A stretch of 64,000 nt of DNA, taken from the sequence record OU343167.1, one strand, 5' to 3'. A model generated the notes under the pieces. It worked only from the letters and a program-made list of their open reading frames with translations, was not told the origin of the DNA and did no database searches. Below are positions 206-54,865 of the stretch, piece by piece. Position 1 is the stretch's first letter. Every line of letters starts with the position of its first letter. Position numbers and translations under genes: made by a program.

Positions 206-230
206 AGCCCCTCTAATGAGGGGCTATATG
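206..230 (+). terminator. Hairpin AGCCCCTC-TAAT-GAGGGGCT followed by TATG (possible late promoter for the next gene)
   Basis: Perfect 8-bp stem between two co-oriented genes; TATG at 227-230, then AGGAG and ATG at 250. Confidence 0.65.
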
Positions 231-249
231 TCCCTCTAGGAGCAGAGTA

Positions 250-789
250 ATGAAATTCGAAAAACTACCGAATGCTAAATATCGGGTAACCGTTTCCTTC
301 GATGAAATGCGCCAACGTATGGTCGCTGGTATTCGCCGGGATCTTGCCGTACTCGGTGAAGAACGAGTAGAAGCAATCGTTGAAAATGCATTTGGTTTGA
401 GTCAACTTCACCTGTGGGAGAATTCTTCTTTTGTTAAGAAGAATGAACTCCTGTTGACAGGAATCGAATTAGGTCATCCCCAAGTAAAAGTATCTTCACT
501 TGAGAATATTATTCTTCGTTCTCTAGTAGTAGATGCAAATCGTGTATGTGCTACTATTGATAGTTGGTCCATTCAATATAGTAACACCATCAATACACCA
601 CATGTATTGATTTTGGATGTTACCGCAGCAGGTCCCTTGGCCCGTGATCTGAATGCCCTTTATAATCTGCTTCCTCTTACAGTTGGGTTTAGATATCAAC
701 TGAATGACAATGAGCAGGTGGTTGATATTGTAGGTATCGATATCCTCTATGAAGATGATTTCGATAATCCTGTATTTAAAGATAAATAA
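250..789 (+). CDS. Prohead protease paralog, probably catalytically inactive (179 aa)
   Basis: SD AGGAG. Blocks PNAKY, NSS..ELGHP, DANRVCATI, AGP, VGFRY, DIVGIDIL match PNADGY, NSS..EFKHP, DDNRVCAHI, YGP, CSVRS, EISTWDFV of the protease at 54878-55711. Confidence 0.8.
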   Translation: MKFEKLPNAKYRVTVSFDEMRQRMVAGIRRDLAVLGEERVEAIVENAFGLSQLHLWENSSFVKKNELLLTGIELGHPQVKVSSLENIILRSLVVDANRVCATIDSWSIQYSNTINTPHVLILDVTAAGPLARDLNALYNLLPLTVGFRYQLNDNEQVVDIVGIDILYEDDFDNPVFKDK

Positions 790-793
790 CGCC

Positions 794-813
794 TATATCA
801 CAGAGGTGATATA
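794..813 (+). promoter_or_regulatory. Probable early (virion RNAP) promoter variant TATATCAC within a perfect inverted repeat
   Basis: TATATCAC-AGAG-GTGATATA; one mismatch to the phiKZ early motif TATATTAC, 30 nt upstream of ATG 843. Confidence 0.55.
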
Positions 814-842
814 AATACACTCTATCAAAAGGAAATTGCAAA

Positions 843-1547
843 ATGAATCAGGTTTTCAACGCTGTAAAATCCATGTTCATTCCGTCTCATCGTGAAGTGT
901 TCGGTAAGGCAATTCGTGATGTAGAACATGATATGGATTTCTTTGAAACCATAATGGACGCTAGCAGTTATAGTCCAACTGAACTCCCTAAAGGCAAAGG
1001 AGAGAGTATGTCTATTGATGTCCTTACTGTCGATGATCTTCCTTTGCGGGGTGATCCTGAGGCAACTTACAAAGTAACTTCTACTTTGGATTTGTATCGT
1101 TGGGTTAATGGGGAATATGTTGTACATAACCCTTACCTCGATCCAGTCGTGCAAAGTTTTGGTGAAAGAGCAGTGATTGTTGATCCAACCGCAACTCTGC
1201 CACATCTGACCGAGGAACATCTCCGTAAAGGTGGTGACATCAGACTGGCCATGGTTTATAATGTTCGGGCTCTGCGTGAAGATCTCCGTCGCATGGAACT
1301 TCTGAACATTTCCATGGAGTCGCTGCTACCGCGTAATCTCCGTGTTAAAGACCTTGACGTACCAGGTATGTTCCTTTCCACTAACCACACCATCTTGACT
1401 CGTCAACTGAAGTCCATCATGCGTGGTAAAGGTAACTATGATAAATATGTCGTAGAAGGCCTGGCTCGCATGGGTGTTGATGTATGGTACGATGAAGCTA
1501 AACGTAAAGTTGGCTTTAAAGATGGCACTTTCGTGGCGCTGGTGTAA
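843..1547 (+). CDS. Hypothetical protein (234 aa) containing a tail-fibre-like bead motif
   Basis: Long ORF with AAGGA SD; aa 60-93 resemble a repeat of the collagen-like fibre at 24077. Confidence 0.85.
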   Translation: MNQVFNAVKSMFIPSHREVFGKAIRDVEHDMDFFETIMDASSYSPTELPKGKGESMSIDVLTVDDLPLRGDPEATYKVTSTLDLYRWVNGEYVVHNPYLDPVVQSFGERAVIVDPTATLPHLTEEHLRKGGDIRLAMVYNVRALREDLRRMELLNISMESLLPRNLRVKDLDVPGMFLSTNHTILTRQLKSIMRGKGNYDKYVVEGLARMGVDVWYDEAKRKVGFKDGTFVALV

Positions 1548-1820
1548 ATGTCTGTCTTCGGTTATGTATTGACGTGGACTCAGGAATTTCACATGTGGTT
1601 CCTGATAGCTGTTCTCGCTGCTTTCTTTGCTCTTTATCTAAATCATCGGTTTAGGTATCTCATCTACGTGCCATTTGAAAAGATTGGCAAACGTGATTTC
1701 ATTAAGATGTCCCTTACTTCAATTACAATGCTGTTGTGTATTGTCGTTGTATTTGGGGCTACTCTACGAATGATCGAGATGAAAGAGATCGATAGAGTAT
1801 GGTCGATTGAACAGCGATGA
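1548..1820 (+). CDS. Small membrane protein (90 aa, two hydrophobic segments)
   Basis: ATG directly follows the upstream TAA; hydrophobic runs WFLIAVLAAFFALYL and ITMLLCIVVVFGATL. Confidence 0.75.
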   Translation: MSVFGYVLTWTQEFHMWFLIAVLAAFFALYLNHRFRYLIYVPFEKIGKRDFIKMSLTSITMLLCIVVVFGATLRMIEMKEIDRVWSIEQR

Positions 1821-1827
1821 GTAACAA

Positions 1828-1876
1828 CATAAAGCCCTCTCCTTCGGGAGAGGGCGATATGCTTTATTTTTTTTTT
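1828..1876. terminator. Bidirectional terminator, CATA...TATG family
   Basis: CATA-AA-GCCCTCTCC-TTCG-GGAGAGGGC-GA-TATG then a long T run, between convergent genes. Confidence 0.85.
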
Positions 1877-2303
1877 ATTTCTCGAAACTTAATTCAACTT
1901 GTGAAGTTGGAATGTAGGCTAGAGAACGAGTAGTGGGTTTTAAAATAACCGTATTACCAGTTAGAGGACCATCTAGGAATTCATCAGTATCGACGGGTAC
2001 AGTCACTTTATCACGGAGTACTTTAATAACATCATGGATAGTTGAATAATCAATTCTCTTCCCTGGAATAACAACCCCATTGAGAGCTTCTTCAATTCGA
2101 TATCGATTAAAGAATATTTGTTTCTGTCCTTTAAAATACTTGCTTGTCCCAACAGCCTGAATAGTAGCTCTTGAGTTATTACCGTTCTGCAACCATATTT
2201 CAATACCAGTCCAAATAACATCCTCAGGACGAATAGCTGGATCCAACTTGTTCTGAATACTAAACTGTTGGAGTAGTTTAGATTTCATGTTTTTAACGTG
2301 CAT
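1875..2303 (-). CDS. Putative virion structural protein, phiKZ-type short paralog-family domain (142 aa)
   Basis: IFFNRYRI and RSLAYIP motifs shared with ORFs 2313, 20666 and the N-terminus of 37172. Confidence 0.7.
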   Translation of the reverse strand: MHVKNMKSKLLQQFSIQNKLDPAIRPEDVIWTGIEIWLQNGNNSRATIQAVGTSKYFKGQKQIFFNRYRIEEALNGVVIPGKRIDYSTIHDVIKVLRDKVTVPVDTDEFLDGPLTGNTVILKPTTRSLAYIPTSQVELSFEK

Positions 2304-2312
2304 CTCTACTCC

Positions 2313-3191: not shown

Positions 3192-3193
3192 GA

Positions 3194-5362: not shown

Positions 5363-5397
5363 GGTAATTTACTCACTTGTTAAACGAGGAGCTTCAA

Positions 5398-8094
5398 ATG
5401 GCTCGACAAACGAATGAGGTAGCGTACCCAAAGTTGCAGACGCTCCGTTTAGGATCGAAAGCAACTCCGACTAACGCCCTCCTCAACCTGTTGCGTAAGG
5501 ACCCGAACGCAATTGGCAGCGAAGCAGCAAAGCCTCGTGTGAACGTAAACCGTTTCACATTAGATAAGGTTTCGCGTGATACTTCGCAAGAGATCGTTGA
5601 CTCCGACTCTATTATGCAGTTGCTACCAGACCTAGAGTTGGTAGAAACAGTATACGTCGGTAGTATCATCGATCCTAAAGCACTTTCGGATACGGACCTC
5701 ACATTCGCTATTGATCCAGCTATCTTTGATAGCGAGATTGCAAAGCTTTTGCTTGAGCCAGTTGAAACGTACTTTAAACGAGACTATAAGATTGACGAGC
5801 GTCTGGACCTGATCCTTCGGGATTGCTTGTTCCGTAAGGGTGCTTCTATCTTAGCTGTTCTCCCTGAAAACGTTCTAGATAACCTTATTAATGGGCGTCG
5901 CCAGGTATCTATGGAAACTTTCTCCTCTATTAGAGATCGTGTCCAGAATACAACTAATGAAAACTTGGGTTTCCTTGGTCACCCAGATAAGAACAATATC
6001 TCTCTTGAGGGATATCATGATAATGCTACAGCTAACCGTATTCGTGGAGATAAGCTCCTCACTGTAACGGATAACTTTAACATTCTCAAAGTTCCATCGA
6101 TGTCACAACGTGTACGCGAAATGAATATTGCGCGTAAGCTTCGCGGTAATCAGATCTCGATGGAAAACGCTGTTCATAAATTCGGTAACGCTGAAATCGA
6201 ACAGCTTTATCAGAATAGACTAGGCGGCACTGAACATACTCAGGTAATCACAGCTCCTAAGTACATGAATCGGCCTTCGGTTGGACATCCATTGACTCTC
6301 CCTCTTCCAATGGAATCCATTGTACCAGTATTCGTACAGGGGCGCCCACATGAACACATCGGCTATTTCTTGTTGGTCGACCAACATGGTTACCCGCTCT
6401 CCAAAGACTCAACCCGAGATTTTTATGGTGAGCTTCAATCAGGTTGGAAAGGTGGTAAGAATAACGACAACAGTTCTGAAGTTCTACGCCTTACTCGGGA
6501 AGCGATGGGTGCTAATACTTCTAAACAAGATTTCGAAGTGGATGAAATCCAGCAAACATACAACGCGATTATTGTGAATGATCTTAACAACCGTCTTCGT
6601 AACGGCATGTATGATCAGGAAATTGAGATCGGTCTAACTGAAGAAATTCAGAGGATCATGTTGTATCGTTCTTGGAAAGCTAAACATACTCAACTGGTAT
6701 TCATCCCGGCAGAGCTTTTAGTTTATATTGCATTCGACTATAACGAAAATGGCATTGGTGAAACTCTTCTGTCTCGCTCGAAGATTATCGCAACCATGCG
6801 TTCTACTCTTCTTATGGCAGAAGCTATTGGGGGTATGCGTAATGCTGTTGGTCGTAAGCGTGTAAGTATTACTCTTGATCCCGACGATACAGATCCGGAA
6901 CAAACAATCAGTAATATCCAATCGAATATCATGGAATCGGCGCACCGTAGTTTCCCTCTGGCTGCCCCTGACCCTACGCAAGCGATGGACCATCTGATTC
7001 GTTCTGGCTTTGACTTTGAAATCAACACCAATGGTGCTGACTACGCAGAGACAAAGGTGCAATACGACGATTACAATACCAACGTTAATGCTGGGAATCC
7101 TGATCTACAAGATCGCCTTCGCCGTATGCACATCTCGGGTATGGGTGTACCACCTGAGAAAGTAGACCCGATGTCTTCTCCAGACTTCGCTACTTCTGTG
7201 GTACAGAATGACCTTGTAATGTCTCGACGTGTTAAAGAGAAACAGAAAGCGTTCTGTCAACACTTGTCTAAATTCATTCGTGTATTTGTAACGCACAGTT
7301 CTATCCTGCGTAATCAAATGTACAAAATCATTCAAGACAACGTTGACATGTTGACATCGCCTGAACTTAAACAGTTGACAGTTGAAGAAGTAGTTGATGA
7401 GTTTATCACTGCCATTGAGGTTTCTCTACCGGCACCCGATAATACTCAACATGAACGTCAAGCAGAATCGATGGATGCCTATGATCGACTTCTGACTATG
7501 GGCTTGGAAAACTACATCACCAGCGAACTCTTCCCCGATGAGTTTACTTCCATACCTGGTCTGTCTGACCAGATAATGGTTCAGTTGAAAGCTGTATTTA
7601 AACGTCAGTTTATGGCAACACACAACATCCTTCCGGAACTTAATGTTCTTACAGAAATGGATGGTGATAAACCTGCATTCAGCTTGCTGGATTGGCTGAA
7701 CGTACAACAGGAAACTGTTGGCTCTGCTATCCTTAGCTATGCTAAGCATCAACAAGAAGCTAAGAAGCGTCTTGAGGCTAAGTATAAATCTACTATCGAT
7801 GGAGCTGATGATGTAGGTGGTGGTGACAGTTGGAACAATGATAATAATGACGAGTCTGGAGATGACTCCTTCTCTGATTTAGATGGTTCTGATACGGACC
7901 TTGGTGTTGATGGTGGTACAGGTGATACTCCAGCTGGTGATAGTGATATCACTGACATGGATGAATCGTCCAGTGAAAATACCGATGAAACTAATCCCGA
8001 AGATGAGCCGCAAGTTGAGGGTCTTGAAGATCCAATATCGGCCGCTGAACAGGATGAACTGGAAGACGAAGAAGATACATCTGACTTCCGTTAA
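5398..8094 (+). CDS. Probable portal protein (phiKZ gp129-like, 898 aa) with acidic C-terminal tail
   Basis: GAGGA SD favours ATG 5398; size, helical core, D/E-rich last ~100 aa, repeated [IV]S[ML]E protease motifs and synteny agree with gp129. Confidence 0.7.
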   Translation: MARQTNEVAYPKLQTLRLGSKATPTNALLNLLRKDPNAIGSEAAKPRVNVNRFTLDKVSRDTSQEIVDSDSIMQLLPDLELVETVYVGSIIDPKALSDTDLTFAIDPAIFDSEIAKLLLEPVETYFKRDYKIDERLDLILRDCLFRKGASILAVLPENVLDNLINGRRQVSMETFSSIRDRVQNTTNENLGFLGHPDKNNISLEGYHDNATANRIRGDKLLTVTDNFNILKVPSMSQRVREMNIARKLRGNQISMENAVHKFGNAEIEQLYQNRLGGTEHTQVITAPKYMNRPSVGHPLTLPLPMESIVPVFVQGRPHEHIGYFLLVDQHGYPLSKDSTRDFYGELQSGWKGGKNNDNSSEVLRLTREAMGANTSKQDFEVDEIQQTYNAIIVNDLNNRLRNGMYDQEIEIGLTEEIQRIMLYRSWKAKHTQLVFIPAELLVYIAFDYNENGIGETLLSRSKIIATMRSTLLMAEAIGGMRNAVGRKRVSITLDPDDTDPEQTISNIQSNIMESAHRSFPLAAPDPTQAMDHLIRSGFDFEINTNGADYAETKVQYDDYNTNVNAGNPDLQDRLRRMHISGMGVPPEKVDPMSSPDFATSVVQNDLVMSRRVKEKQKAFCQHLSKFIRVFVTHSSILRNQMYKIIQDNVDMLTSPELKQLTVEEVVDEFITAIEVSLPAPDNTQHERQAESMDAYDRLLTMGLENYITSELFPDEFTSIPGLSDQIMVQLKAVFKRQFMATHNILPELNVLTEMDGDKPAFSLLDWLNVQQETVGSAILSYAKHQQEAKKRLEAKYKSTIDGADDVGGGDSWNNDNNDESGDDSFSDLDGSDTDLGVDGGTGDTPAGDSDITDMDESSSENTDETNPEDEPQVEGLEDPISAAEQDELEDEEDTSDFR

Positions 8095-8097
8095 CGA

Positions 8098-8128
8098 CAT
8101 AAAGCCCGGCCTTGAGCCGGGCAATATG
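8098..8128. terminator. Bidirectional terminator, CATA...TATG family
   Basis: CATA-AA-GCCCGGC-CTTGA-GCCGGGC-AA-TATG between convergent genes. Confidence 0.8.
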
Positions 8129-8133
8129 TTGCT

Positions 8134-17396: not shown

Positions 17397-17885
17397 ATGT
17401 ATAAACATTACGACCCCCTTACCGAAGAGGAAGTAACTACTTTAGTAGACCTCTCTCGTAAGGTTAAATATAAAGACTCGTATGGCTCTCGTTGCCGTAT
17501 CGGTAAGAACAAAACCAAAGCACTGAGTATTTACAACTATTCTAAGTGGTTTGATTGGACATCTAAACAACGAGATATCTTCAAGGTTGGTTTTAGTGAA
17601 GATATCCAAAATAAAGCTGTTCAAGGTTGGTTCCTAGATATTCCAGCTGGTCGTGGTTTCCTCGATCAGATGACAACGTGGGTCAATAAAACTGGTGCAG
17701 GTACCATCGTCGCAACTGCATTAAAAGATAGACAAGCCATTCAACTTAATGGACGTTTGATCGAACTTCGTAAAGGTGAACAGATCGCCTTTAACCTTAG
17801 TACAGTTCACGCGATTCCTAAATCCGACCATGGTCAGTTGTGGGCATGTGTAATGATACGTGGTGACTTCCAACAGTACACCTAA
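17397..17885 (+). CDS. Degenerate 2OG-Fe(II)/DSBH-fold paralog (162 aa)
   Basis: Aligns by eye to the upstream oxygenase (GFLDQM vs GFGMPEHID; LNGRLI vs LNGEFI; VHAIP vs PHSVP) but lacks HxD and the Arg. Confidence 0.6.
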   Translation: MYKHYDPLTEEEVTTLVDLSRKVKYKDSYGSRCRIGKNKTKALSIYNYSKWFDWTSKQRDIFKVGFSEDIQNKAVQGWFLDIPAGRGFLDQMTTWVNKTGAGTIVATALKDRQAIQLNGRLIELRKGEQIAFNLSTVHAIPKSDHGQLWACVMIRGDFQQYT

Positions 17886-17886
17886 C

Positions 17887-17916
17887 GGCATAAACCTCCC
17901 TAACGGGAGGCAAGCC
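17887..17916 (+). terminator. Hairpin terminator
   Basis: GGCATAAA-CCTCCC-TAAC-GGGAGG-CAAGCC after TAA 17885. Confidence 0.6.
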
Positions 17917-17968
17917 AAAAATTCATACACAATGGTACAATGAACTTTCTAAGTCAAGGATTAAAAGA

Positions 17969-18865: not shown

Positions 18866-18875
18866 GGACTTGGTT

Positions 18876-20575: not shown

Positions 20576-20585
20576 CAATAATATT

Positions 20586-20614
20586 AGCCCCTCCTTAAGT
20601 GGAGGGGCTTTTAT
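20586..20614 (+). terminator. Intrinsic terminator
   Basis: AGCCCCTCC-TTAAGT-GGAGGGGCT-TTTAT; a TATG follows at 20620. Confidence 0.8.
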
Positions 20615-20665
20615 AATGCTATGTGGGTTAAGTAAATTTTGTAAACCACAATTGAGGGTTTAACA

Positions 20666-27400: not shown

Positions 27401-27409
27401 TAATAGCGG

Positions 27410-27442
27410 CATAAAGCCCAGGGTTAACCCTGGGCTTTTATG
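27410..27442. terminator. Bidirectional terminator, CATA...TATG family
   Basis: CATA-AA-GCCCAGGG-TTAA-CCCTGGGC-TTT-TATG between convergent genes; the minus-strand stop codon lies in the loop. Confidence 0.85.
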
Positions 27443-28185
27443 TCGTCTTTATCAACTTCGATACCGTTATCTCCGGGACGAATCATGGAGAAATATTTAG
27501 CATCTATAAATTCAAAGTCCATGTGAATCAGCCGCTCGACCCTGAACTTAAATAGTTCAAACTTCTTCTCCTCGATAGTGAGTTTACTAACGTCACGTTC
27601 GAAGAGTTTAGGTCCAATAAAATTGAAGCATGGCATTTGAACTTTAGACAAAGCAAGATAATGAGTGTGCATCCATTCATGGAAATCGTAAGTGATATAC
27701 ATCGCATAGAGAGCATCCAAGAATTTAGGTGTGAGCTCTTCTAATGGATGACTAACTACTTCCACGGGCATTTCTTCGCCGTATATTTCTTGGATGATAT
27801 TTTCAAGATCATCGATAACTTCACCAGGTAACGTGTAAGGCCAGATGTTGATCGTAAGACCAATCTCGTCTTCAGGATTACCCATGTTATCCATTCTGTT
27901 TACATGATCTTCCGCGAGAATTCGCATCAAGAACGGACTGATACCTGTTAGGATAGAAGCGTTGATAGTATCAGCGGAATTATCTCCGCCTCTATTAGCA
28001 TACGCTTCTTTGAATTGCTCCGTTGTAACAAGACCACCTGTTAGAGTGGTCCAGTCATCATTTTCACGAAGCCAATATTCCTTAGTGGAAACCAACCGTT
28101 CTGCTGCCTCCTTGTTAATTGTAGACATGACTCCAAGACGGGTGTCAAGTAATACATCAAGAGGTATCAGAATACGTTTGATCAT
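27424..28185 (-). CDS. Hypothetical protein (253 aa), weak HAD-like N-terminal motif
   Basis: Long ORF; ILIPLDVLLDT resembles HAD motif I; ATGA overlap with the upstream gene. Confidence 0.7.
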   Translation of the reverse strand: MIKRILIPLDVLLDTRLGVMSTINKEAAERLVSTKEYWLRENDDWTTLTGGLVTTEQFKEAYANRGGDNSADTINASILTGISPFLMRILAEDHVNRMDNMGNPEDEIGLTINIWPYTLPGEVIDDLENIIQEIYGEEMPVEVVSHPLEELTPKFLDALYAMYITYDFHEWMHTHYLALSKVQMPCFNFIGPKLFERDVSKLTIEEKKFELFKFRVERLIHMDFEFIDAKYFSMIRPGDNGIEVDKDDIKAQG

Positions 28186-30061: not shown

Positions 30062-30077
30062 TGGAATACCTACTTGA

Positions 30078-30106
30078 CATAGAGGGAGCTAATGCTCCCG
30101 TCTATG
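30078..30106 (-). terminator. Hairpin with CATA...TATG flanks
   Basis: CATAGA-GGGAGC-TAAT-GCTCCC-G-TCTATG between co-oriented minus-strand genes. Confidence 0.7.
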
Positions 30107-30109
30107 ATA

Positions 30110-30502
30110 TTAATCACAACAACTGCTATCGCTACTTGAACCACTATCGGTAGTATCGCTAGAAAGGGCCACAGCAGCTCCTACAGCGAAGATTGTGTTG
30201 GACAGGTCCATATCCTCGGCTCCTCTACCAGAAGCGTAACCACGGCCTTCTGGGATCCTTAAAGGTTGAACCTGTTTTGATTCGTTTGCTCTATAGCGCT
30301 CGTACCATTCTTTTGCTGGGTCAGATAAAGTGGATCTATATTTTTCACTGCCCATTTCAATGGCTTCGCGTGCCAAAGAGATCTGTTCGCATTTACCCAA
30401 ATCCCCGCGCTCGGCAGGGATAGGTTCAACGATCACAACTCCTTCTTTAGGCAGCTTTCGCTTTGGCCAGATCCAACGGAATAATCTTAGCACGTTCATC
30501 AT
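30110..30502 (-). CDS. Hypothetical protein (130 aa) with Ser-rich tail
   Basis: Fills the gap between uvsX and the hairpin; overlaps the uvsX 3' end by 56 nt. Confidence 0.6.
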   Translation of the reverse strand: MMNVLRLFRWIWPKRKLPKEGVVIVEPIPAERGDLGKCEQISLAREAIEMGSEKYRSTLSDPAKEWYERYRANESKQVQPLRIPEGRGYASGRGAEDMDLSNTIFAVGAAVALSSDTTDSGSSSDSSCCD

Positions 30503-32953: not shown

Positions 32954-32958
32954 GACAA

Positions 32959-32990
32959 CATATTGCCCCACCTAATGGTGGGGCTTTATG
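32959..32990. terminator. Bidirectional terminator, CATA...TATG family
   Basis: CATA-TT-GCCCCACC-TAAT-GGTGGGGC-TT-TATG between convergent genes. Confidence 0.85.
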
Positions 32991-32993
32991 CCG

Positions 32994-33404
32994 TTAAGCT
33001 GTCGCCTGACGTTCCTTCATGCAATGGTGTACTAATTGCTTAAGTTCTTTAACGAAAGTTTCCTTGTCTGTATATAGAAGCCAGCAGGGAGTCTTTCGAG
33101 CGATCCTTTCGAAGTACTTGTCAGATTCAAGATCAACCTTCTCGATAGGGAGGATACCTTTCCAAACGTAAGGTCCAAATAACGTTGGTAAGCGTAAGGC
33201 GCTTTCATCCCTCACGAGACGCATCACTGAATTAAGCGAAGATATCCGCTCGCATTCGTGATCGCGACACTGCACCAGTGCGGCATGCAATGACGCCATT
33301 ACGCACATCCGTTTGAAGCCGTTATCCAGGTGATTCCAGATGAAAACCCAGAATGTCCTGAATGGATTTTCATCCAGCCTCAAGAATCTGCTAATAAGGC
33401 TCAT
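32994..33404 (-). CDS. Hypothetical protein (136 aa)
   Basis: ORF downstream of RNase H in the same operon. Confidence 0.7.
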   Translation of the reverse strand: MSLISRFLRLDENPFRTFWVFIWNHLDNGFKRMCVMASLHAALVQCRDHECERISSLNSVMRLVRDESALRLPTLFGPYVWKGILPIEKVDLESDKYFERIARKTPCWLLYTDKETFVKELKQLVHHCMKERQATA

Positions 33405-35816: not shown

Positions 35817-37124
35817 ATGTACAATTTGAAAGGCTTTTACAGCTTCCCTGCACTCATTTCGAATGCACCTGAAACTGTAGCGAAGCTCGGCGAACTTTCG
35901 TCGAACAGCGCAACCTATGCAAAGGACAAGACTTTCCACACCGGTACGTCCGCACCAAACGTTGTTTTTATTTCTTTTCATAGCGTAAAGGATGGAAACG
36001 TTGTTGATGTTGCTGGTAACAACAAAGATCAAGTTCTTAAGCTAGGTGAATATATTTATCAACAGTCGATTTCTGGTACGATCGGTTCCGATCCTAACGT
36101 ACTTCGTCAACTGGTGATGGCAGAGTTTAATGGGGTTATCCAAAGTTTCCGTAGTGGTCAAATGATTTCTAACGGTAGCATTTGGATGCCAGAATGGGTT
36201 GAATTCGTATTAGTTGGTTCTGAAGCTAACCAGATGAATATCTGGCTTGCAGATGAATCCTTTGCAGCTCAGTACGATGAATACATCATCGAGATCGTAC
36301 ATCCGATAATTCCGTATGACGATTTCTTTAAAGATCCGCTTATTGTTAAGCAGCTACTGGACGATTATGATCTCGTTGAGAAGATCGAAGAAGTTCAGGC
36401 TAAGCGGGCACAATATCCATATACACATCAACGGGCATTCATGTTTGAATACCATAATCCCCGTGATGATTCTATGCGTTTCCCCGCCTATTGGATTGCA
36501 ATCGTCTATGGCGAGGCTGGCAACAACCCTGACCTCATCAAAGACAAGATTGTAGAAGAACTACTGGCTGACTCTGCACATCCACGGACAGATTGGGAAG
36601 TTATTCTTCCAGACCTGTTCATGACAACTGAGTTCATCTTTACTCCATTCTGGAACCAGTATTCTATCGAACAAGCCGATTATCGAGCTGGTACCTACAG
36701 TCCTACTGTAGACCATCGTAAACGACTTCCTTTGATTCGTCGAACAGCACGTGGGCCAGGTTATACTCAAACCTACGTAGACAATAAATTCGAGCTGTCT
36801 TCGAACACATACAAATCCATTGCCTTCTCCGTATTGGGTAACCCTCAAAACAGGAATGGTATTACACAGTTCTCGCAGAAATTTAAAGATTATCAGTTAG
36901 TAACTAACGATACTGGAGATATCAATAAATCGTCGCCTGAAACAATTGAATGGATGATGTTGTTCTCGAAGCTACTGAAAGCAGCCGAAGGGATGACTCG
37001 CTATAGCTCTGTTCCACAAGGGGTGTCTCGCATGATTCGTGATAATGTGATTTATGCAAGCGCATACTTTAAGAACGTTAACTACATGGTTGTAGCTAAA
37101 GCTAGCGTAGAAGAATTATCCTAA
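35817..37124 (+). CDS. Virion structural protein (gp157-like position, 435 aa)
   Basis: GAGGA SD; long ORF; synteny. Confidence 0.7.
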   Translation: MYNLKGFYSFPALISNAPETVAKLGELSSNSATYAKDKTFHTGTSAPNVVFISFHSVKDGNVVDVAGNNKDQVLKLGEYIYQQSISGTIGSDPNVLRQLVMAEFNGVIQSFRSGQMISNGSIWMPEWVEFVLVGSEANQMNIWLADESFAAQYDEYIIEIVHPIIPYDDFFKDPLIVKQLLDDYDLVEKIEEVQAKRAQYPYTHQRAFMFEYHNPRDDSMRFPAYWIAIVYGEAGNNPDLIKDKIVEELLADSAHPRTDWEVILPDLFMTTEFIFTPFWNQYSIEQADYRAGTYSPTVDHRKRLPLIRRTARGPGYTQTYVDNKFELSSNTYKSIAFSVLGNPQNRNGITQFSQKFKDYQLVTNDTGDINKSSPETIEWMMLFSKLLKAAEGMTRYSSVPQGVSRMIRDNVIYASAYFKNVNYMVVAKASVEELS

Positions 37125-37127
37125 AAA

Positions 37128-37160
37128 CATAAGGGAGAGGGGAAACCCTCTCCTTTTATT
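37128..37160 (+). terminator. Intrinsic terminator
   Basis: GGAGAGGG-GAAA-CCCTCTCC-TTTT. Confidence 0.8.
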
Positions 37161-37171
37161 AGGGGATACAC

Positions 37172-42168: not shown

Positions 42169-43353
42169 ATGTCCTATCTGGCACAATGGAATGAAGTATC
42201 TGAAGACCTGAGTAAGATTCAGCGTCTTGGTTCTTCTCTAGAGCGCTACCGCGATCTGCTAGCTGGACGTGACGTTGTAACAGGGGCTACTGCTGATGTT
42301 ATCTCGGTAGCCCTTGAGAGTATTGACCCTGACTTTGATATCAAAGAAGGTTCTAAAATTACTCTGAGAGCAATCAAAGAAGGCATTATCGCGGCGGCGA
42401 AAGCCACCCGCGATATTGTCCGCTACATCTGGGAATTGCTTAACTCTTTCTACGTCAAATTCACCGGTAGCATTCGTCGTGTTCGTCGCACACAAGAAAG
42501 CATTAGTCGACGCTTAGGTAAACTAGGCTCGGCAACTACTTACCAGAAAATGTCTGTAGCTGGTGTACAACGTCTATCTATTGATGGTAACTTCGTGGGG
42601 TTAGACCTTAACCACTTGAACGACATCAAAGATCTAACCAACTACATTCTCAACCATTATCCTAAATCGGTTGCAAAGATTGCACGGAACAGTTCTCGAC
42701 AGTTCCTGAATATCTTGGATAAATCTAAGGATGCTAGCTCTAATGAAGTAGCTGGTGAGGTTGTAGAAGCATTTGCAAATATCCTCCAACGTGATTTTAC
42801 CCCTCCGCATGGTCATGCCCCTCTCCAACAGAGAGAACTGACTACTGCGGAAAAAGGTGTCCATCGTTCGGTTGTCCTACCTGGCAACGTAGCGTTCATC
42901 TATACACCACCTGACGTTATCAGTCAGATGTTGAATAATAGTAAAGTCGCTAATGAGGATGTTGTAAGACGTTCGTTTACAATGCAGTTCGCTGAGCTAC
43001 AGCTAAATGTAGCTGACCGTTCTGAACGTGAGATTGATGTACCTTCTGTCCGTACTCTTAGTGAGATCACTCAGTTGATCTCCAGCATCCTTTCTCTAGC
43101 AGAGAAAGCTGAAACGGGTCAGCGGGACTTCTCCACGGTCAAAGTAGTTGTAGACGACGCTATTCGACAGATCGCTGAAGCGGGTGAAGAGGCAGGTAAA
43201 TCCTATAATTCTGTTCTCTCTATTATCGGCGAGATTTCGAAGAAGTTAGCTGAACCAATGGGTTTCTATACTCACTGGCTGGCTGTATCGCTTAATGTGT
43301 ATTTGACTTTCATTAGTCATTGCATCAAGCATTACGAAGCTGAAGGCGTATAA
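42169..43353 (+). CDS. Internal head protein paralog (gp163-like, 394 aa)
   Basis: ISVALE-S cleavage motif; VQRLSIDG and VLPGN motifs shared with 40398. Confidence 0.75.
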   Translation: MSYLAQWNEVSEDLSKIQRLGSSLERYRDLLAGRDVVTGATADVISVALESIDPDFDIKEGSKITLRAIKEGIIAAAKATRDIVRYIWELLNSFYVKFTGSIRRVRRTQESISRRLGKLGSATTYQKMSVAGVQRLSIDGNFVGLDLNHLNDIKDLTNYILNHYPKSVAKIARNSSRQFLNILDKSKDASSNEVAGEVVEAFANILQRDFTPPHGHAPLQQRELTTAEKGVHRSVVLPGNVAFIYTPPDVISQMLNNSKVANEDVVRRSFTMQFAELQLNVADRSEREIDVPSVRTLSEITQLISSILSLAEKAETGQRDFSTVKVVVDDAIRQIAEAGEEAGKSYNSVLSIIGEISKKLAEPMGFYTHWLAVSLNVYLTFISHCIKHYEAEGV

Positions 43354-43356
43354 CGG

Positions 43357-43390
43357 CATATCGCCCCTACCATTCGGTAGGGGCTTTATG
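43357..43390. terminator. Bidirectional terminator, CATA...TATG family
   Basis: CATA-TC-GCCCCTACC-ATTC-GGTAGGGGC-TT-TATG between convergent genes. Confidence 0.85.
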
Positions 43391-43393
43391 TTG

Positions 43394-43660
43394 TCAACCG
43401 CTACTAGTCGCATCGGGTCTACCGGTTGCAGTATGACCACAGCTAGCGGACATTCCTTGCAGAACAATTGGCACACCTTTAATAAAAGCTTTCGTTGAAG
43501 CTTGTACCATGTTTGCGCTGTTATGTGGGGATCGCCCATGACCATCTACGGGATCACCTAATACAGCAATTGGATTACCTTTATAGAAGCCAGTTGAATT
43601 ACCACTTGGTCTTATTGTTCCACCAGCAGAATCTATATTACAAACAGCTATACCAGGCAT
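43394..43660 (-). CDS. PAAR-like spike tip protein (88 aa)
   Basis: [12 protein letters not shown]...H...[15 protein letters not shown] resembles T4 gp5.4/PAAR; ATG 43660 overlaps the spike gene stop (TAATG). Confidence 0.85.
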
Positions 43661-44537: not shown

Positions 44538-47030
44538 ATGCAAATCACTCTACTGCGTTTGAAAAAATTCAAACGACTTATGACGGCAAATATCCAATTC
44601 TTCGAATGGACTCCCACTAAGAACATGATGATTATACTCGGTTCTAATGGTTCGGGTAAATCGTCAGTTATGGATGAACTAACTCCATTGCCATCTCGAC
44701 ATACAAACTTTGATAAAGATGGTTTTAAAGAATTCCATTGCTACCATAATGGAAGCCTTTATGTACTTCATTCGGTATATGGTCATGGTACTGGTCGTCA
44801 CTCTTTCAAACGGGATAATGAAGAGTTGAATAGCGGCGGTACATATAAAATCCAAGAAGAACTCTGTCTACAAGAGTTTGGACTTACACGTGAAATCCAT
44901 GAGATTGCAACTGGTCGAGTTAAATTTACCGCTATGTCTACAGCAAAGCGCCGCGAGATTCTTACGCGGATGTCAACTGTTGATTTGACTTATGCGTTAG
45001 ATGTATACAGAGACATTAAACAGGAACATCGCAGTCAGAAAGGTGTCATCGATCTAATCACAAAACGCCTAGTCACTGAAAATCACGATATCTTTAGTGA
45101 TAGTGAAATGACACTGATGCGCGAAGAGACCTCTCGTCTTACTAAGCGTTTGAATAAACTCTTCCAAGAAAAGCAAAATGATGTTCGACCTGCTTTCCAG
45201 AATGTGCAACAAGCTGAAAACGAACTCGAATCTATTCTGAATGATGCACGCGCTTGCCTACGTGATTATCCAATGTTACCGGCCGCTATTCGTGTAGCTA
45301 ACCATGGAGAATTCCAGGCAGAATTCAATCGGGTATCGGAGCAATACTCTTCGATCAATGCAGTGATTAATCGTCTTGCAGAAGAACTAGAAAAGCTTCG
45401 TACTAACTCTCCATCGGCGATTGAAATATCGGAAGATGATGTTAATGCATTGAAACAACAGCATGCTGCGAATCTGGCGAATGTTGAATCGTGTATTAAC
45501 TCGATGAAAACTTATACTGGTCAATTTCCAATTATTAAGTTTAATACAGCCGGTGCTGATCCTATTTGTAAGTTGGATGGAATGTTCGACCGATGGTTTG
45601 ATCTGTTAACTAGTTTCCCTGATAACGGTGACGGTTGGATGAATCGGGAAGAAGCAACCAAACGACAGAACCGTCAGAAAGAGCTTAGGAATATTTACGC
45701 ACAAGTCTCAGATAAAATCGAGCAGGCTAATTCCAGGTTGTCGCGTTTGAAAGGTTGTGAATCTGTGGTATGTCCATCTTGTACCCATGAATTTAAACCT
45801 GGCGTAGATCCATCTGAAACGGATATGCTTGAAGCTTCTAAAGTTAAACTCCACGAAGCTATTGATCGTATCGAAGCAGAACAAAAAGAGAACGAAGAAT
45901 ATCTTGAGAAATTCCAGGACTATTCAAGTTATGTTTTCCAGTACATGTCTTTGACAAAAGACTACCCAGAGTTTAATGAACTGTGGGATTACTGTGCAAC
46001 TAACATGACAATGTATCGGACTCCTGCATTGCATAAGACTGATGCTTTGCAATGGCATACAGCCATGCGGAGTTATGTCAAATCCCGTACTGAACTAGAG
46101 CTTGCTACTAATATCGAGAAACGTCTTAAAGTTATCGCTGAGATAGACCAAGATGCAATCGGTTATATGAAACGCCGCGCCGAAGAATTGGAAACTGAAA
46201 TTAACATCATGTATGTTAAAGCTTCAGATATCAATCAGTACATGCAAGATCTACGGTCTGGTGAACAATCTATTCTACGTAACAATAAACGTATCCATGA
46301 TGTCCTGGACCGTTATGAAATGTGGAAAGATAAAGTAGAGCGTCATTCGGAGTATTTGCTTGATAGAGCCTATACTGAAGAGATAGGAACCATCCAGGTA
46401 AAACTCGCTGAAACAACGCGACAGCTCACACAGATGGAACAACGTGAAACGACCATACGTACGCTTGAAAACGAAGTAACAAATGCTACTGAAGTACATA
46501 GCGATCTTGGTATTCTAATTAAGTCGTTATCTCCAAACGGTGGATTGTTGGGTCGATATATGCTTGGCTTCTTGCAGGGTGTTACTTACATTGTCAATGC
46601 ATTCATTGACGAGGTGTGGACATACCCAATGGAAGTACTACCTTCTAAAGTTGAAAAGGAGGAGTTAGACTACAACTTCCCTCTCAAAGTAGCAGGTGGT
46701 CAAGTAATGGCACCTGACATTTCGTATGGTTCCGATAGTCAATTGGAAATCGTTAACTTTGCATTCAAGATGGCTATTCTGAAGTTCCTCGGTCTTGAAG
46801 ACATGCCATTGTATCTTGATGAATTTGGTCGTACGTTTGATGAACAACACCGCGCAAACTTAATCCCGTTTATCTCTCGTCTTATCGAGAACGGTCAATT
46901 TAAACAAGTGTTCTTTATCAGCCACTTCCAGTCTACTCATGGTGCTTTCAATAATGCAGAAGTAGTTGTTATTAACCCAACTAATATCACCGTACCTGAA
47001 GCTTATAACAAGAACGTAGTTATCAAGTGA
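44538..47030 (+). CDS. sbcC: SbcC/Rad50-like ATPase
   Basis: Walker A GSNGSGKSS, long coiled coil, CPSC zinc hook, Walker B LYLDE, SH motif. Confidence 0.92.
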   Translation: MQITLLRLKKFKRLMTANIQFFEWTPTKNMMIILGSNGSGKSSVMDELTPLPSRHTNFDKDGFKEFHCYHNGSLYVLHSVYGHGTGRHSFKRDNEELNSGGTYKIQEELCLQEFGLTREIHEIATGRVKFTAMSTAKRREILTRMSTVDLTYALDVYRDIKQEHRSQKGVIDLITKRLVTENHDIFSDSEMTLMREETSRLTKRLNKLFQEKQNDVRPAFQNVQQAENELESILNDARACLRDYPMLPAAIRVANHGEFQAEFNRVSEQYSSINAVINRLAEELEKLRTNSPSAIEISEDDVNALKQQHAANLANVESCINSMKTYTGQFPIIKFNTAGADPICKLDGMFDRWFDLLTSFPDNGDGWMNREEATKRQNRQKELRNIYAQVSDKIEQANSRLSRLKGCESVVCPSCTHEFKPGVDPSETDMLEASKVKLHEAIDRIEAEQKENEEYLEKFQDYSSYVFQYMSLTKDYPEFNELWDYCATNMTMYRTPALHKTDALQWHTAMRSYVKSRTELELATNIEKRLKVIAEIDQDAIGYMKRRAEELETEINIMYVKASDINQYMQDLRSGEQSILRNNKRIHDVLDRYEMWKDKVERHSEYLLDRAYTEEIGTIQVKLAETTRQLTQMEQRETTIRTLENEVTNATEVHSDLGILIKSLSPNGGLLGRYMLGFLQGVTYIVNAFIDEVWTYPMEVLPSKVEKEELDYNFPLKVAGGQVMAPDISYGSDSQLEIVNFAFKMAILKFLGLEDMPLYLDEFGRTFDEQHRANLIPFISRLIENGQFKQVFFISHFQSTHGAFNNAEVVVINPTNITVPEAYNKNVVIK

Positions 47031-47060: not shown

Positions 47061-47405
47061 ATGACCGAAAAAGAGAGAGTAGAGTTGCTGGAGATTATCT
47101 TCGATAACTTCTATTACCTACTTATACCACATTACCGACATGATCTTTCAGCCATCACTGGTCGGTTTGAATATGTGTTTAAAGAGCAAGCGAGATTATT
47201 GTTGGGGGATCTACGTATAGAAGTACCTCATATTAGGTCTAAAACGCTCTTTACGGTGGCGATCAATGAAACACGTGTCCTTGTAGTAGAATGGGAAGAA
47301 GGTGTTAAGGTGGAGCTCCTAGAAGGTTTAAATGGACAACTCTGGCGCTCCCTGTTGAAGGCTATAGTTGGTAGTTCATCGTACGTCCTAAGAGCATCAT
47401 GCTAA
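47061..47405 (+). CDS. Hypothetical protein (114 aa)
   Basis: GGAG SD, downstream of sbcC. Confidence 0.7.
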   Translation: MTEKERVELLEIIFDNFYYLLIPHYRHDLSAITGRFEYVFKEQARLLLGDLRIEVPHIRSKTLFTVAINETRVLVVEWEEGVKVELLEGLNGQLWRSLLKAIVGSSSYVLRASC

Positions 47406-47436
47406 TATAAAAGCCTCCCTTCGGGGAGGCTTTATG
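47406..47436 (+). terminator. Terminator, CATA...TATG family variant
   Basis: TATAAAA-GCCTCCC-TTCG-GGGAGGC-TT-TATG. Confidence 0.8.
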
Positions 47437-47465
47437 TTATCTTACATTTAAAGCATTTTAAACCC

Positions 47466-47473
47466 TATATTAC
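47466..47473 (+). promoter_or_regulatory. Early (virion RNAP) promoter
   Basis: Exact TATATTAC with AT-rich upstream sequence, 37 nt before ATG 47511. Confidence 0.75.
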
Positions 47474-49311: not shown

Positions 49312-49323
49312 GTTGTAAATAGG

Positions 49324-49356
49324 CATATGCCCTCTCCTTCGGGAGAGGGCTTTATG
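49324..49356 (+). terminator. Terminator, CATA...TATG family
   Basis: CATA-T-GCCCTCTCC-TTCG-GGAGAGGGC-TT-TATG; core identical to 1834-1855 and 54838-54859. Confidence 0.85.
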
Positions 49357-49378
49357 TCAATAAAATTTTTTTCAGATC

Positions 49379-49386
49379 TATATTAC
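49379..49386 (+). promoter_or_regulatory. Early (virion RNAP) promoter
   Basis: Exact TATATTAC preceded by an A/T tract. Confidence 0.75.
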
Positions 49387-50779: not shown

Positions 50780-50784
50780 GACAA

Positions 50785-50819
50785 CATAGAGCCCAGCCTT
50801 CCATAGGCTGGGCAATATG
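50785..50819. terminator. Bidirectional terminator, CATA...TATG family
   Basis: CATA-GA-GCCCAGCCT-TCCAT-AGGCTGGGC-AA-TATG between convergent genes. Confidence 0.85.
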
Positions 50820-50822
50820 TCG

Positions 50823-51335
50823 TTAAGAGAGACCAAGTGCGGCTTCTTCCTCACGTGCTTTCTTTTCAGCAACCGCGCGCATGCGTTCGTTGAACTCTTC
50901 AGATGTCTCGTTAATGACACCAATTTCACCTTCACCGGCGGCGTGTTCAAACTCACCAAGATCTTCATTATCGATATCTGGTTCTGAACCGCGGTTATCT
51001 TCACCAGGTACGGCAACGAACGGGTTCTTGTTCTTAGCTTGCCTAATGAACTCTGCCATCGATTCAACCAGATCACGTGCAGACTTATTACCTTCTGCTT
51101 CAATCTGTGTACGACGATTCTGGATAGTCGTGCGATCCATCGAGTCCATAACTTTCAACATCGAATCAATAGATTCTTTGTCGGTTGGAATAGTACCATC
51201 CACACGGGAGGTCATTACACCATGAAGAATCCGATGCTTAACGTTTTGTGTAAGTTTTAGCTGGTCTTCATAAGAAAGCTCAGAGTACAAAACCTCTGGT
51301 TCTGTCGGAATAAATTCCGGGATCGGAGTTTCCAT
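50823..51335 (-). CDS. Hypothetical acidic helical protein (170 aa)
   Basis: GAGGT SD; ORF ends at the bidirectional terminator. Confidence 0.8.
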   Translation of the reverse strand: METPIPEFIPTEPEVLYSELSYEDQLKLTQNVKHRILHGVMTSRVDGTIPTDKESIDSMLKVMDSMDRTTIQNRRTQIEAEGNKSARDLVESMAEFIRQAKNKNPFVAVPGEDNRGSEPDIDNEDLGEFEHAAGEGEIGVINETSEEFNERMRAVAEKKAREEEAALGLS

Positions 51336-51953: not shown

Positions 51954-52006
51954 ATAGAGTTGCGAAACGAAACCTTCTCTTTAATCACCGTAGGTGTAAA
52001 TGAAAA

Positions 52007-52762: not shown

Positions 52763-52766
52763 GAGA

Positions 52767-53144: not shown

Positions 53145-53150
53145 AGTGAC

Positions 53151-53188
53151 TGCCTTGGGTTCTCCCTTCGGGGAGAGCCTAATGGCAA
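53151..53188 (+). terminator. Extended hairpin terminator
   Basis: TGCC-TTGGG-T-TCTCCC-TTCG-GGGAGA-G-CCTAA-T-GGCA. Confidence 0.7.
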
Positions 53189-53224
53189 TCATTGTATGAC
53201 TCTTATTTTTTTTGGTGAAATTCA

Positions 53225-54349
53225 ATGGTACAATTAGCGATCCCTTCATTTACTGGTTTACCAGATGCGGCTGTCAAAGAGGTTGATGCCTATACAGAAC
53301 AAAGCGCTGAATTAAAAAATCAGCTAGCCTCTAAGGTAACAGCATTTGGTGTAGGTGCAGACGAACTCATTCAAAAATCACTTGGTGTTGTTAAAGGTAT
53401 CGGTAACAAGATCCTTAACAACGGTATTGATCTCAACATGGCTAGAACACGAATTGCGGATGCCCTAAAAGGGTCACGTAGTTCCATTGTAAGTCTAGCT
53501 ACGGATGTTGAACGATCGATTATGGAAGAATTAACCGGAGAAGATACCGGTACAGGTTATGTTCGTAAAGCAACGGATATGATCGATGGCGTTAAAATGG
53601 TTCTCAACCAAAAGGATTATTATTTTAAAGATGGGAACTTTAGCGGAGTTAATAGTATTATTGGGTTCATGGGTGACCTGACTAATAACTCATTGCTCCG
53701 TGTATTCGATCTTGGTGCTGAAGCAGCACTGATGAAAGGGATTATCGAAGAGGTTACAGCTTGGGGTATACCCGATCTAGTTGATGAAACCTTTGGAGCC
53801 AAGTGGACGGATAACAAGTATGAATACGACTATGATGATGATTTCAGATTCTCTGTTGTTAAGCGAGCTTCTGCTAGTATTAGCCCTAGTACTGATCTTG
53901 CCACAATCGAAAGGTTAATGCTACATGGCGGTGTTTCAGCACTGATCGCTGAGAACCCAAATTTTCCTGCGCAGTTACTACAGAATTACGTGTTCCCTGA
54001 AGAATGTGTACCTGGTGGTCCTTTCCCTAAAATGATTCCTGACCCGAATAATCCAACTGGACCTGAGATCCCAGATCCAACTGGTGCACAGGAACGTCCT
54101 AACTACGCCGACCAAATGGCTACTTTAGTACGCATCCTTAATCAACTCAAACCAGACTGGTTCACTACTCGGCGCCAGGGTCAACCCGTGTGGAATCTTT
54201 ACTTCCTAAGTCACGCTTCTGAAGATGCGACCACATTGATTCTTAGTAGTGAAACTCATCGTGAAGCAATGTTGACAGCTCCGTTCTACAAGATGGAAAA
54301 CCCAATAGAGCTGATCAAGTCGTTCTATCCTGATGCTGCTATTCAATAG
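53225..54349 (+). CDS. Virion structural protein (gp174-like position, 374 aa)
   Basis: TATG upstream; long ORF; Pro-rich insert; synteny. Confidence 0.7.
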   Translation: MVQLAIPSFTGLPDAAVKEVDAYTEQSAELKNQLASKVTAFGVGADELIQKSLGVVKGIGNKILNNGIDLNMARTRIADALKGSRSSIVSLATDVERSIMEELTGEDTGTGYVRKATDMIDGVKMVLNQKDYYFKDGNFSGVNSIIGFMGDLTNNSLLRVFDLGAEAALMKGIIEEVTAWGIPDLVDETFGAKWTDNKYEYDYDDDFRFSVVKRASASISPSTDLATIERLMLHGGVSALIAENPNFPAQLLQNYVFPEECVPGGPFPKMIPDPNNPTGPEIPDPTGAQERPNYADQMATLVRILNQLKPDWFTTRRQGQPVWNLYFLSHASEDATTLILSSETHREAMLTAPFYKMENPIELIKSFYPDAAIQ

Positions 54350-54352
54350 CGA

Positions 54353-54385
54353 CATAAAGCCCTCCCTTTTGGGGAGGGCAATATG
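54353..54385 (+). terminator. Terminator, CATA...TATG family
   Basis: CATA-AA-GCCCTCCC-TTTTG-GGGAGGGC-AA-TATG. Confidence 0.8.
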
Positions 54386-54412
54386 CCGTCTTAATCTAAC
54401 TTAATTGAGAAC

Positions 54413-54420
54413 TATATTAC
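54413..54420 (+). promoter_or_regulatory. Early (virion RNAP) promoter
   Basis: Exact TATATTAC followed by AAACGTGA. Confidence 0.75.
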
Positions 54421-54516
54421 AAACGTGAATTGGGTGAGATGTTCGAGCATCCCACCCAGTTTGCGATACGTCTGATTCGGTTAAACTCAGACTTTCTTCA
54501 CATGGGATAGAAACCT

Positions 54517-54828
54517 ATGAAAAAATGGCCTTTCATTAACGAGAACTTCCGAAGATTAGTAAGAATCTTCTCGGTAGATGAAGGGCGGGAATATTACCTT
54601 ACACCTGAAGGTTTAGCACTGGATGATGTGAGTAATACTCTCGCATATAATTCGGTAGATAAGTATAAACTTGCTTTAAATAAAGCTCGTAAACTTATAA
54701 CCCAAGGTGTGTTCGGGAGATCAGTCTACCTGGACGGTCAAGATGTAACAGAAGAACAGATCAATGGTAAACCACAGTTAGTCCGTTGGCCACCTGTTAA
54801 TGAAGAAGCTTATGGCTTCGTAGCATAA
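54517..54828 (+). CDS. Hypothetical early protein (103 aa)
   Basis: Single ORF between the early promoter and a terminator. Confidence 0.7.
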   Translation: MKKWPFINENFRRLVRIFSVDEGREYYLTPEGLALDDVSNTLAYNSVDKYKLALNKARKLITQGVFGRSVYLDGQDVTEEQINGKPQLVRWPPVNEEAYGFVA

Positions 54829-54831
54829 AGG

Positions 54832-54865
54832 CATATCGCCCTCTCCTTCGGGAGAGGGCTTTATG
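54832..54865. terminator. Bidirectional terminator, CATA...TATG family
   Basis: CATA-TC-GCCCTCTCC-TTCG-GGAGAGGGC-TT-TATG followed by a T run. Confidence 0.85.

Follow-up and report, generated by a model that had tools for sequence, protein, structure and literature searches.

Oriented intergenic palindromes of a Pawinskivirus jumbo phage as probable two-way transcription terminators of the phiKZ type

A 64,000-nt stretch of sequence record OU343167.1 (the window, by which we mean the whole stretch at its full length) contains a dispersed family of intergenic hairpins with oriented outer arms, CATA on one side and TATG on the other. The original prediction, made from the letters alone, regarded them as more than generic terminators and proposed fused terminator/late-promoter units, RNase III-like processing sites or sites recognised by a phage protein. 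Which of these functions, if any, do the elements serve? In sequence the window matches Pseudomonas phage vB_PaeM_phiLBG22 at 100% identity, and PS119XW and PA1C at 99.6%; these are jumbo phages of the genus Pawinskivirus with genomes of about 302 kb. HPP-Temi (Temi) is approximately 81% identical to the window, and Psa21 is a distant relative. The window also shares synteny with the phiKZ region of about 126-180 kb (tblastn of flanking genes), and one of its products (722 aa) shares 59% identity with PHIKZ128 (gp128). We conclude, with a probability of roughly 0.85, that these hairpins serve the multisubunit RNA polymerases encoded by the phage itself as phiKZ-type, factor-independent terminators, mostly in both directions.

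The oriented palindrome family is real. The motif CATANNGCCC is present in 18 copies in the window against 1.0 expected (with a maximum of 4 in 100 shuffles), and the 22-nt core GCCCTCTCC-TTCG-GGAGAGGGC occurs three times against 0 expected, as had been claimed. A single CATANNGCCC match, at 16180, is intragenic, has no hairpin and was ascribed to chance. At the genome level the motif was found 49 times in PS119XW (3 in controls) and 49 times in HPP-Temi (5 in controls); SPN3US was searched for GGGCTTTATG and none was found. Each of the sites named in the original prediction forms a strong hairpin at its predicted place. Ten of the eleven hairpins described as two-armed are indeed two-sided, whereas that at 47406 has ATA, not CATA, on its 5' side; the copies called partial (206, 17887 and 37128) are one-sided by both reading and folding. 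The stems (6-11 bp) are GC-rich (5' arm rich in C, 3' arm rich in G) and enclose loops of 3-8 nt; the RNA folds have energies of -22.7 to -28.3 kcal/mol (z-scores of -4.9 to -7.2). An Rfam search of the whole window at gathering score produced 0 matches.

The full consensus, ACRR-CATA-nn-(GC hairpin)-nn-TATG-YYGT, extends the arms by 4 nt on each side (ACRR...YYGT) beyond those first described. Two types of tail can be distinguished, U-type (TT-TATG) and purine-type (AA/GA/AG/AC-TATG), and a two-sided element usually has one U-type tail. The nn-TATG-Y-Y-G-T consensus holds for both types in PS119XW, Temi, Psa21 and phiKZ: pyrimidines occupy TATG+1 and +2 in about 97% of tails, +3 is mostly G and +4 mostly T. 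The tails read UUUAUG or RAUAUG, and the U-tracts are as short as had been noted (2-3 U ahead of AUG); an extra T-run, 6-9 nt past the stem tail, is present only at 1828 and 54832. When GC-clamped stems of PS119XW were collected in an unbiased hairpin search, TATG was placed at an offset of 2 nt in 78 tails and of 3 nt in 20, and the control word CATA occurred 0-1 times at these offsets. The same stem-nn-TATG placement was found in Temi, Psa21, phiKZ, 201phi2-1 and PhiPA3. The Temi orthologues of the window elements keep arms and stems and differ in their loops, one of them with compensatory changes in the stem.

The identity of the family was revealed by comparison with phiKZ, whose transcript ends have been mapped by ONT-cappable-seq (Putzeys et al. 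2024, Microlife; PMC10914365). The 61 intrinsic terminators of that phage, for which the criterion was a read drop of 20% or more, gave the motif BCCYCCCCHWWDGGGRRGGBYTTATKYYGT, i.e. a hairpin followed by YTTATKYYGT, and the same terminator motif was found in 201phi2-1 (PMC11512511). The 3' half of the window family is this published motif. Our comparison used the terminator and start-site tables of the bioRxiv supplement (10.1101/2023.10.13.562163), namely starts P008-P126 (n = 119) of P001-P149 and terminators T034-T118; what is said of phiKZ and 201phi2-1 transcripts refers to these rows and to the consulted parts of the two papers. The mapped phiKZ terminators carry the complete shape seen in the window, including the mirrored ACATAA arm, and some are two-way copies with 3' ends on both strands (T059/T060, T070/T071, T051/T052 and T092/T093). 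The clearest 3' ends lie about 8 nt past the stem, at the YY step (T057 is ...GGGC-TTTATGTT, ending before G). Purine-type tails, with no U beside the stem, also have mapped ends (T035, T043, T059, T071 and T076).

Eleven of the window elements are located in gaps orthologous to phiKZ gaps with mapped 3' ends, as judged by tblastn of the flanking genes. Moreover, a covariance model trained only on window copies (eight of them), a check suggested with the original prediction, gave 162 strand-matches across PS119XW, Psa21 and phiKZ, and 12 of its 14 sites in phiKZ 70-168 kb coincide with a listed 3' end (about 0.5 expected by chance). A few listed phiKZ ends (T037, T058 and T083) are situated at A-runs approximately 30 nt before the terminator hairpin on the strand read, and look like artefacts of oligo-dT internal priming rather than true ends. 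Each of these A-runs is complementary to a T-run located behind the tail of the other strand; in the window such T-runs lie at about 1866-1875 and 54871-54879.

The placement of the elements relative to genes follows transcription. All seven convergent junctions of the window carry a two-sided element, either 4-14 nt away from the stop codons or overlapping a stop codon, and no two-sided element was found at a divergent junction of the window. In convergent contexts of PS119XW, 23 of 28 tails contain TATG. In co-directional contexts the sense strand shows T-T-T-A-T with an information content far above that of the 5' flank, and the G of TATG is present in only about 40% of the sense tails. The elements mark gene ends, with two-way copies between convergent genes. 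They are listed below with coordinates and strand; functional names are predictions.

197..234, + strand: one-sided element (hairpin 205-226, TATG 227-230), about 20 nt ahead of the ATG at 250; weak model match; the Temi orthologue retains hairpin and TTATG, with a changed loop.
1824..1865 (hairpin 1828-1861), both strands: two-way terminator, convergent junction 1820/1875; TT-TATG tail on the - strand, GA-TATG tail on the + strand followed by a T-run; the orthologous phiKZ gap has T058 and a model match at 126765-126805.
8094..8132 (hairpin 8098-8128), both strands: two-way terminator, convergent junction 8094/8134; AA/AA spacer mismatch, U-type tail on the - strand; identical in Temi; the orthologous phiKZ gap (132775-133104) has 3' ends T059(-) and T060(+).
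17883..17920, no strand assigned: one-sided element between two + genes (CATA 17887-17890, hairpin 17895-17910), with TTTATGCCGT on the - strand only; the orthologous phiKZ gap has T063(+), a 3' end at a hairpin of like shape.
20578..20625, + strand: terminator (hairpin 20586-20609 and TTTTATAATG), then CTATG of a probable late promoter.
27406..27446 (hairpin 27410-27442), both strands: two-way terminator, convergent junction 27400/27424; both tails U-type, with one bulged T; model match with E 1.4e-4 although outside the training set; the phiKZ gap has T067(+) and T068(-).
30074..30110 (hairpin 30078-30106), between two - genes: two-sided element; sense (-) tail TC-TATG, 17 nt before the start codon at 30061; phiKZ T069(-) sits 12 nt upstream of the homologue of gene 29714-30061.
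32955..32994 (hairpin 32959-32990), both strands: two-way terminator, convergent junction 32953/32994; TT/TT mismatch, retained in Temi despite a loop change; U-type tail on the + strand; the phiKZ gap has T070(-) and T071(+).
37124..37165, + strand: co-directional terminator; CATAAG, hairpin 37134-37153 and tail TTTTATTA without the G; the orthologous phiKZ gap has T074(+).
43353..43394 (hairpin 43357-43390), both strands: two-way terminator, convergent junction 43353/43394; TC/TT mismatch, U-type tail on the + strand; compensatory stem changes in Temi; the orthologous phiKZ gap has T076(+).
47402..47440, + strand: co-directional terminator; 5' arm ATATAAAAG without the C, tail TTTATGTTAT; early-promoter motif next at 47466.
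49320..49360 (hairpin 49324-49356), no strand assigned: two-sided element; TTTATG tail on the + strand, 5' spacer of 1 nt; early-promoter motif next at 49379; identical in Temi.
50781..50823 (hairpin 50785-50819), both strands: two-way terminator, convergent junction 50779/50823; GA/AA mismatch in this strain; the orthologous phiKZ gap has T081(-).
54349..54389 (hairpin 54353-54385), between two + genes: two-sided element; AA/AA mismatch; sense (+) tail AATATGCCGT, U-type tail antisense; Temi keeps orientation and mismatch.
54828..54869 (hairpin 54832-54865), both strands: two-way terminator, convergent junction 54828/54878; TC/TT mismatch; U-type tail on the + strand, then a T-run; phiKZ has a model match at 178300-178339, with T083(-) adjoining.

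Gene end and terminator overlap at 27410-27442: the minus-strand gene 27424-28185 has its stop codon (positions 27424-27426) inside the TTAA loop of this hairpin.

In the mechanism that we propose, termination would be directed by a GC-rich stem of 6-10 bp with a loop of 3-8 nt (often UUCG), followed at fixed spacing by nn-UAUG-YY-GU on the transcribed strand. Most copies carry such a tail on both strands, which accounts for their palindromic look: the CATA arm is the reverse complement of the TATG tail of the opposite strand, and hence one hairpin could stop transcription in both directions. Such a two-way hairpin would end transcription from both convergent genes, or block antisense read-in.

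Several observations weigh against the assignment as terminators. A search of sequencing runs for the Pawinskivirus phage returned no RNA run, only one low-share run of uncertain kind, so that its assignment rests on orthology to phiKZ, and the 3' ends obtained by ONT-cappable-seq do not separate termination from 3' processing; that the ends are made by termination in this phage is therefore only probable. The tails do not contain the canonical bacterial tract of about 6-8 U directly after the stem, and the purine-type tails have no U beside the stem at all, so the mechanism of release would not be the textbook one. At 54353 the purine-type tail is the one on the sense strand, and the U-type one points towards no gene. 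Finally, the terminator reading does not account for the avoidance of complementarity between the flanks of the two-way elements.

This avoidance was analysed on elements with anchored positions. The recurrent internal mismatch pointed out in the original prediction proved to be non-random and conserved beyond the window: in copies spaced exactly 2/2, neither spacer position is paired in 7/7 cases in the window, 17/20 in PS119XW, 19/21 in Temi and 5/5 in Psa21. In the seven window elements the spacer pairs are AA/AA, AA/GA, GA/AA, TT/TT or TC/TT, all non-Watson-Crick, and perfectly complementary spacers are depleted (p = 0.003, five genomes combined, Temi left out). The main exception is the site at 50785, whose spacer is polymorphic: it is GA/TC in PS119XW (175389-423) and AA/TT in Temi (128743-776), perfectly paired in both, which gives stems of 15 bp and 14 bp, respectively. 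The conserved internal loop is part of a wider rule, according to which the flanks of two-way elements avoid Watson-Crick pairing at positions that are free of consensus. Two-sided hairpins mixing a U-type and a purine-type tail are common (23 in PS119XW, 23 in Temi, 14 in Psa21 and 14 in phiKZ), and those with two U-type tails are few (3, 6, 0 and 0, respectively). The pyrimidines that follow TATG also differ between the two tails of an element, as the following counts show:

PS119XW: TATG+1 the same on both tails in 10/38 (expected 18.0); identical YY pairs 1 (expected 9.2).
Temi: same in 7/38 (expected 17.1); identical YY pairs 1 (expected 9.4).
Psa21: same in 2/24 (expected 9.4); identical YY pairs 1 (expected 5.8).
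phiKZ: same in 1/19 (expected 7.9); identical YY pairs 0 (expected 3.7).
201phi2-1: same in 2/21 (expected 8.1); identical YY pairs 0 (expected 4.3).
PhiPA3: same in 1/38 (p = 4e-9; expected 17.2); identical YY pairs 0 (expected 9.1).

Taken over flank positions, A.C plus G.T combinations number 97 against 47 Watson-Crick pairs (Fisher p = 5e-5), and the avoidance, seen in each of the six genomes, leaves the CATA/TATG block isolated. The transcript with the purine-type tail tends to have G.U rather than A.C (24:11 and 21:5 in the two genomes that were analysed after the idea had been formed). Compensation of U content within a tail was considered as the cause of unlike tails and rejected: in one-sided elements spacer type is not linked to TATG+1 or +2 (p = 0.57 and 0.46), which indicates that the effect acts between the flanks. 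We therefore infer that the recurrent mismatch reflects selection against flank pairing. The terminator class itself has already been published for phiKZ and 201phi2-1, and the flank rule is the one new point. In the consulted parts of the phiKZ paper (PMC10914365) and its supplement there is no description of the mirrored ACRR-CATA arm, the purine-type tail or flank anti-complementarity, and the consulted parts of the 201phi2-1 paper (PMC11512511) do not describe the flank rule.

Could the hairpins nevertheless be terminators fused to late promoters, with the non-virion RNA polymerase (nvRNAP) initiating at the hairpin's foot, on the G of TATG, and transcribing into the next gene or, at convergent copies, making antisense RNA? 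The outward TATG is indeed the motif of the phiKZ late promoter, with +1 at the G, and is needed for transcription by nvRNAP, TATG alone being insufficient (PMC4666361). The beta-like nvRNAP subunit GP123 of phiKZ binds TATG of the non-template strand (PMC12809450), and a homologue of it (70% identity, E 7.7e-271) is encoded at 119219-120835 of PS119XW, just upstream of the window region; on this basis, and on that of synteny, the phage encodes a multisubunit RNA polymerase of the phiKZ type. Many hairpins are only 14-30 nt ahead of the next start codon, and two phiKZ late starts, P049 and P075, are directly behind terminators. Nevertheless, of the 119 phiKZ starts compared, none falls with its +1 on a stem-nn-TATG; for P049 and P075 a second TATG serves, 5 nt and 8 nt, respectively, past the TAT(G) of the tail. 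About 97% of terminator tails have C or T directly after TATG; among the late promoters of phiKZ examined, this base is mostly A, T or G. TATG is best conserved at convergent junctions, where it faces gene 3' ends and a start would yield only antisense RNA, and in co-directional sense tails the G is usually missing. The short distance from hairpin to start codon needs no promoter, because a terminator defined by a read drop of at least 20% allows read-through to express the genes downstream (PMC10914365). Since TATG did not peak at any constant distance ahead of the start codons of PS119XW, promoters could not be deduced from sequence in this manner. A fused unit of this kind is therefore quite unlikely. 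The layout of P075 is kept at 20578-20625: the orthologous phiKZ gap has T064(+) and P075 10 nt apart in the same ...TTTATAATGCTATG arrangement, and the arrangement is conserved in Temi. We regard this site as a genuine tandem, a terminator and then, probably, a separate late promoter.

If RNase III or some other nuclease cleaved the stem that contains the internal loop, or if the hairpin merely protected against 3' exonucleases, the mapped 3' ends would be products of processing, which 3'-end sequencing cannot tell from termination. RNAfold predicts for the read-through RNA an outer helix of 4-8 bp, a 2x2 internal loop and the GC stem, and a stable 3' hairpin would protect the upstream mRNA in any case. 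The outer helix shows no compensatory covariation; its positions display anti-covariation instead, so that positive selection for this helix was rejected, and an extended helix of the RNase III type is not maintained in the six genomes. The flanks appear, in other words, to be selected against pairing and not for it, and the sense-strand tail is much better conserved than the 5' flank. Typical RNase III substrates span about two helical turns, which is longer than stem and outer helix together in this family. We accordingly see little likelihood in a processing function. An element acting at the DNA level, either bound by a DNA-binding phage protein as a dimer or belonging to a mobile, REP/MITE-like repeat family, would agree with the palindromic arms, the core found in three identical copies and the dispersed, intergenic distribution. 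Stems and loops differ among copies, with base pairing and not sequence being kept; the copies are positional orthologues across genera rather than insertions; their orientation tracks transcription; and the arms are non-symmetric at free positions. This makes a DNA-level role highly improbable. The claim that the elements are more than generic was correct in that they form a sequence-specific, oriented family, and not in any novelty of the class. As for recognition by a phage protein, a possible candidate is the RNA polymerase itself, through GP123.

Early-promoter motifs are also found near the terminators. The motif (c)TATATTAC, which is the early-promoter motif of the mapped phiKZ starts P012, P017, P028 and P034, is present on the + strand of the window at 47466-47473, 49379-49386 and 54413-54420, and also at 43634-43641, inside a minus-strand gene. 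Its copies in the window lie in an AT-rich context, about 40-100 nt ahead of start codons and shortly past terminators; the + strand of PS119XW has about 23 copies, mostly 34-57 nt before a start codon. In phiKZ early promoters follow terminators at about 35 nt, and the layout at 47466, 49379 and 54413 is similar. The idea that TATG tails are specific to late (nvRNAP) units was dropped, because the early/late split is not clean: downstream of early-promoter motifs, TATG tails were counted in 11/27 cases in PS119XW and in 15/42 in phiKZ. In PS119XW the TATG tails are concentrated in the structural-gene regions, again without a clean split relative to early-promoter motifs, and between 237 and 285 kb, among small plus-strand genes, the terminator tails are mostly TTTATT or TTCTAT, with the G absent.

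If the elements are terminators, a pair of linked ideas may be put forward, tentatively and with more doubt than confidence: that TATG(YYGT) is a stop signal read by the polymerase, and that the flanks are selected not to pair, which isolates CATA/TATG. The elongating polymerase might read TATG(YYGT) of the non-template strand as a pause and release signal, perhaps with the same pocket of the GP123 beta-lobe as at late promoters, and this could permit termination in either direction without a U-tract. The flanks might be held apart either so that the tail is kept free or because long double-stranded RNA or long DNA palindromes are avoided. By the annotation of PS119XW, the window encodes an SbcC-like subunit of a palindrome nuclease (window positions 44538-47030, +) and a RuvC-like resolvase (18870-19442, +); both are candidate sources of selection against long perfect palindromes, of which a fully symmetric two-way terminator would be one. 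A further gene of the window, at 33415-34860 on the minus strand, encodes a 481-aa protein that combines an RNase H domain at its N-terminus (Pfam E 7e-23) with a long C-terminal extension; it is a possible counterpart of the RNase H-clamp protein described for Chimalliviridae (PMC13648698).

These results provide a map of transcription units for an unstudied genus of jumbo phages of P. aeruginosa that are therapeutic candidates, and extend the terminator code of phiKZ to Pawinskivirus, Tepukevirus, Serwervirus and Miltoncavirus. The stop signal shares four core letters with the late promoter, which is read by the polymerase core, and this, like the strict rule against pairing of two-way flanks, could make sigma-less termination testable; neither point establishes the mechanism.

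To conclude, the elements are of a known terminator kind, in a genus where it was previously undescribed. With the phiKZ terminators they share the C-rich/G-rich stem-loop followed by YTTATKYYGT, the intergenic location right past stop codons, the two-way convergent copies and the mapped 3' ends at positional orthologues; they differ in the spacer between stem and TATG, which is mostly 2 nt in Pawinskivirus (TT, or AA/GA) and in phiKZ often T against AT. The phiKZ late promoter has the same TATG; unlike it, the window tails continue with YYGT, and no examined phiKZ start is at a hairpin-adjacent TATG. Motif A of 201phi2-1, a phage of another genus (Serwervirus) and another host, was called strongly similar to the phiKZ motif by its authors, who reported 15 two-way sites and took the elongated A/B hairpin as a hint of resistance to antitermination (PMC11512511); our scan of that genome revealed the same stem-nn-TATG tails and the same flank rule. 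Bacterial bidirectional intrinsic terminators (A-tract/U-tract) likewise employ one hairpin for both directions, with a 5' flank that mirrors the 3' tail. The window family differs from them in having a UAUG-YY-GU box in place of a long U-tract, and in flanks that are kept non-complementary where the bacterial form has an A:U extension.

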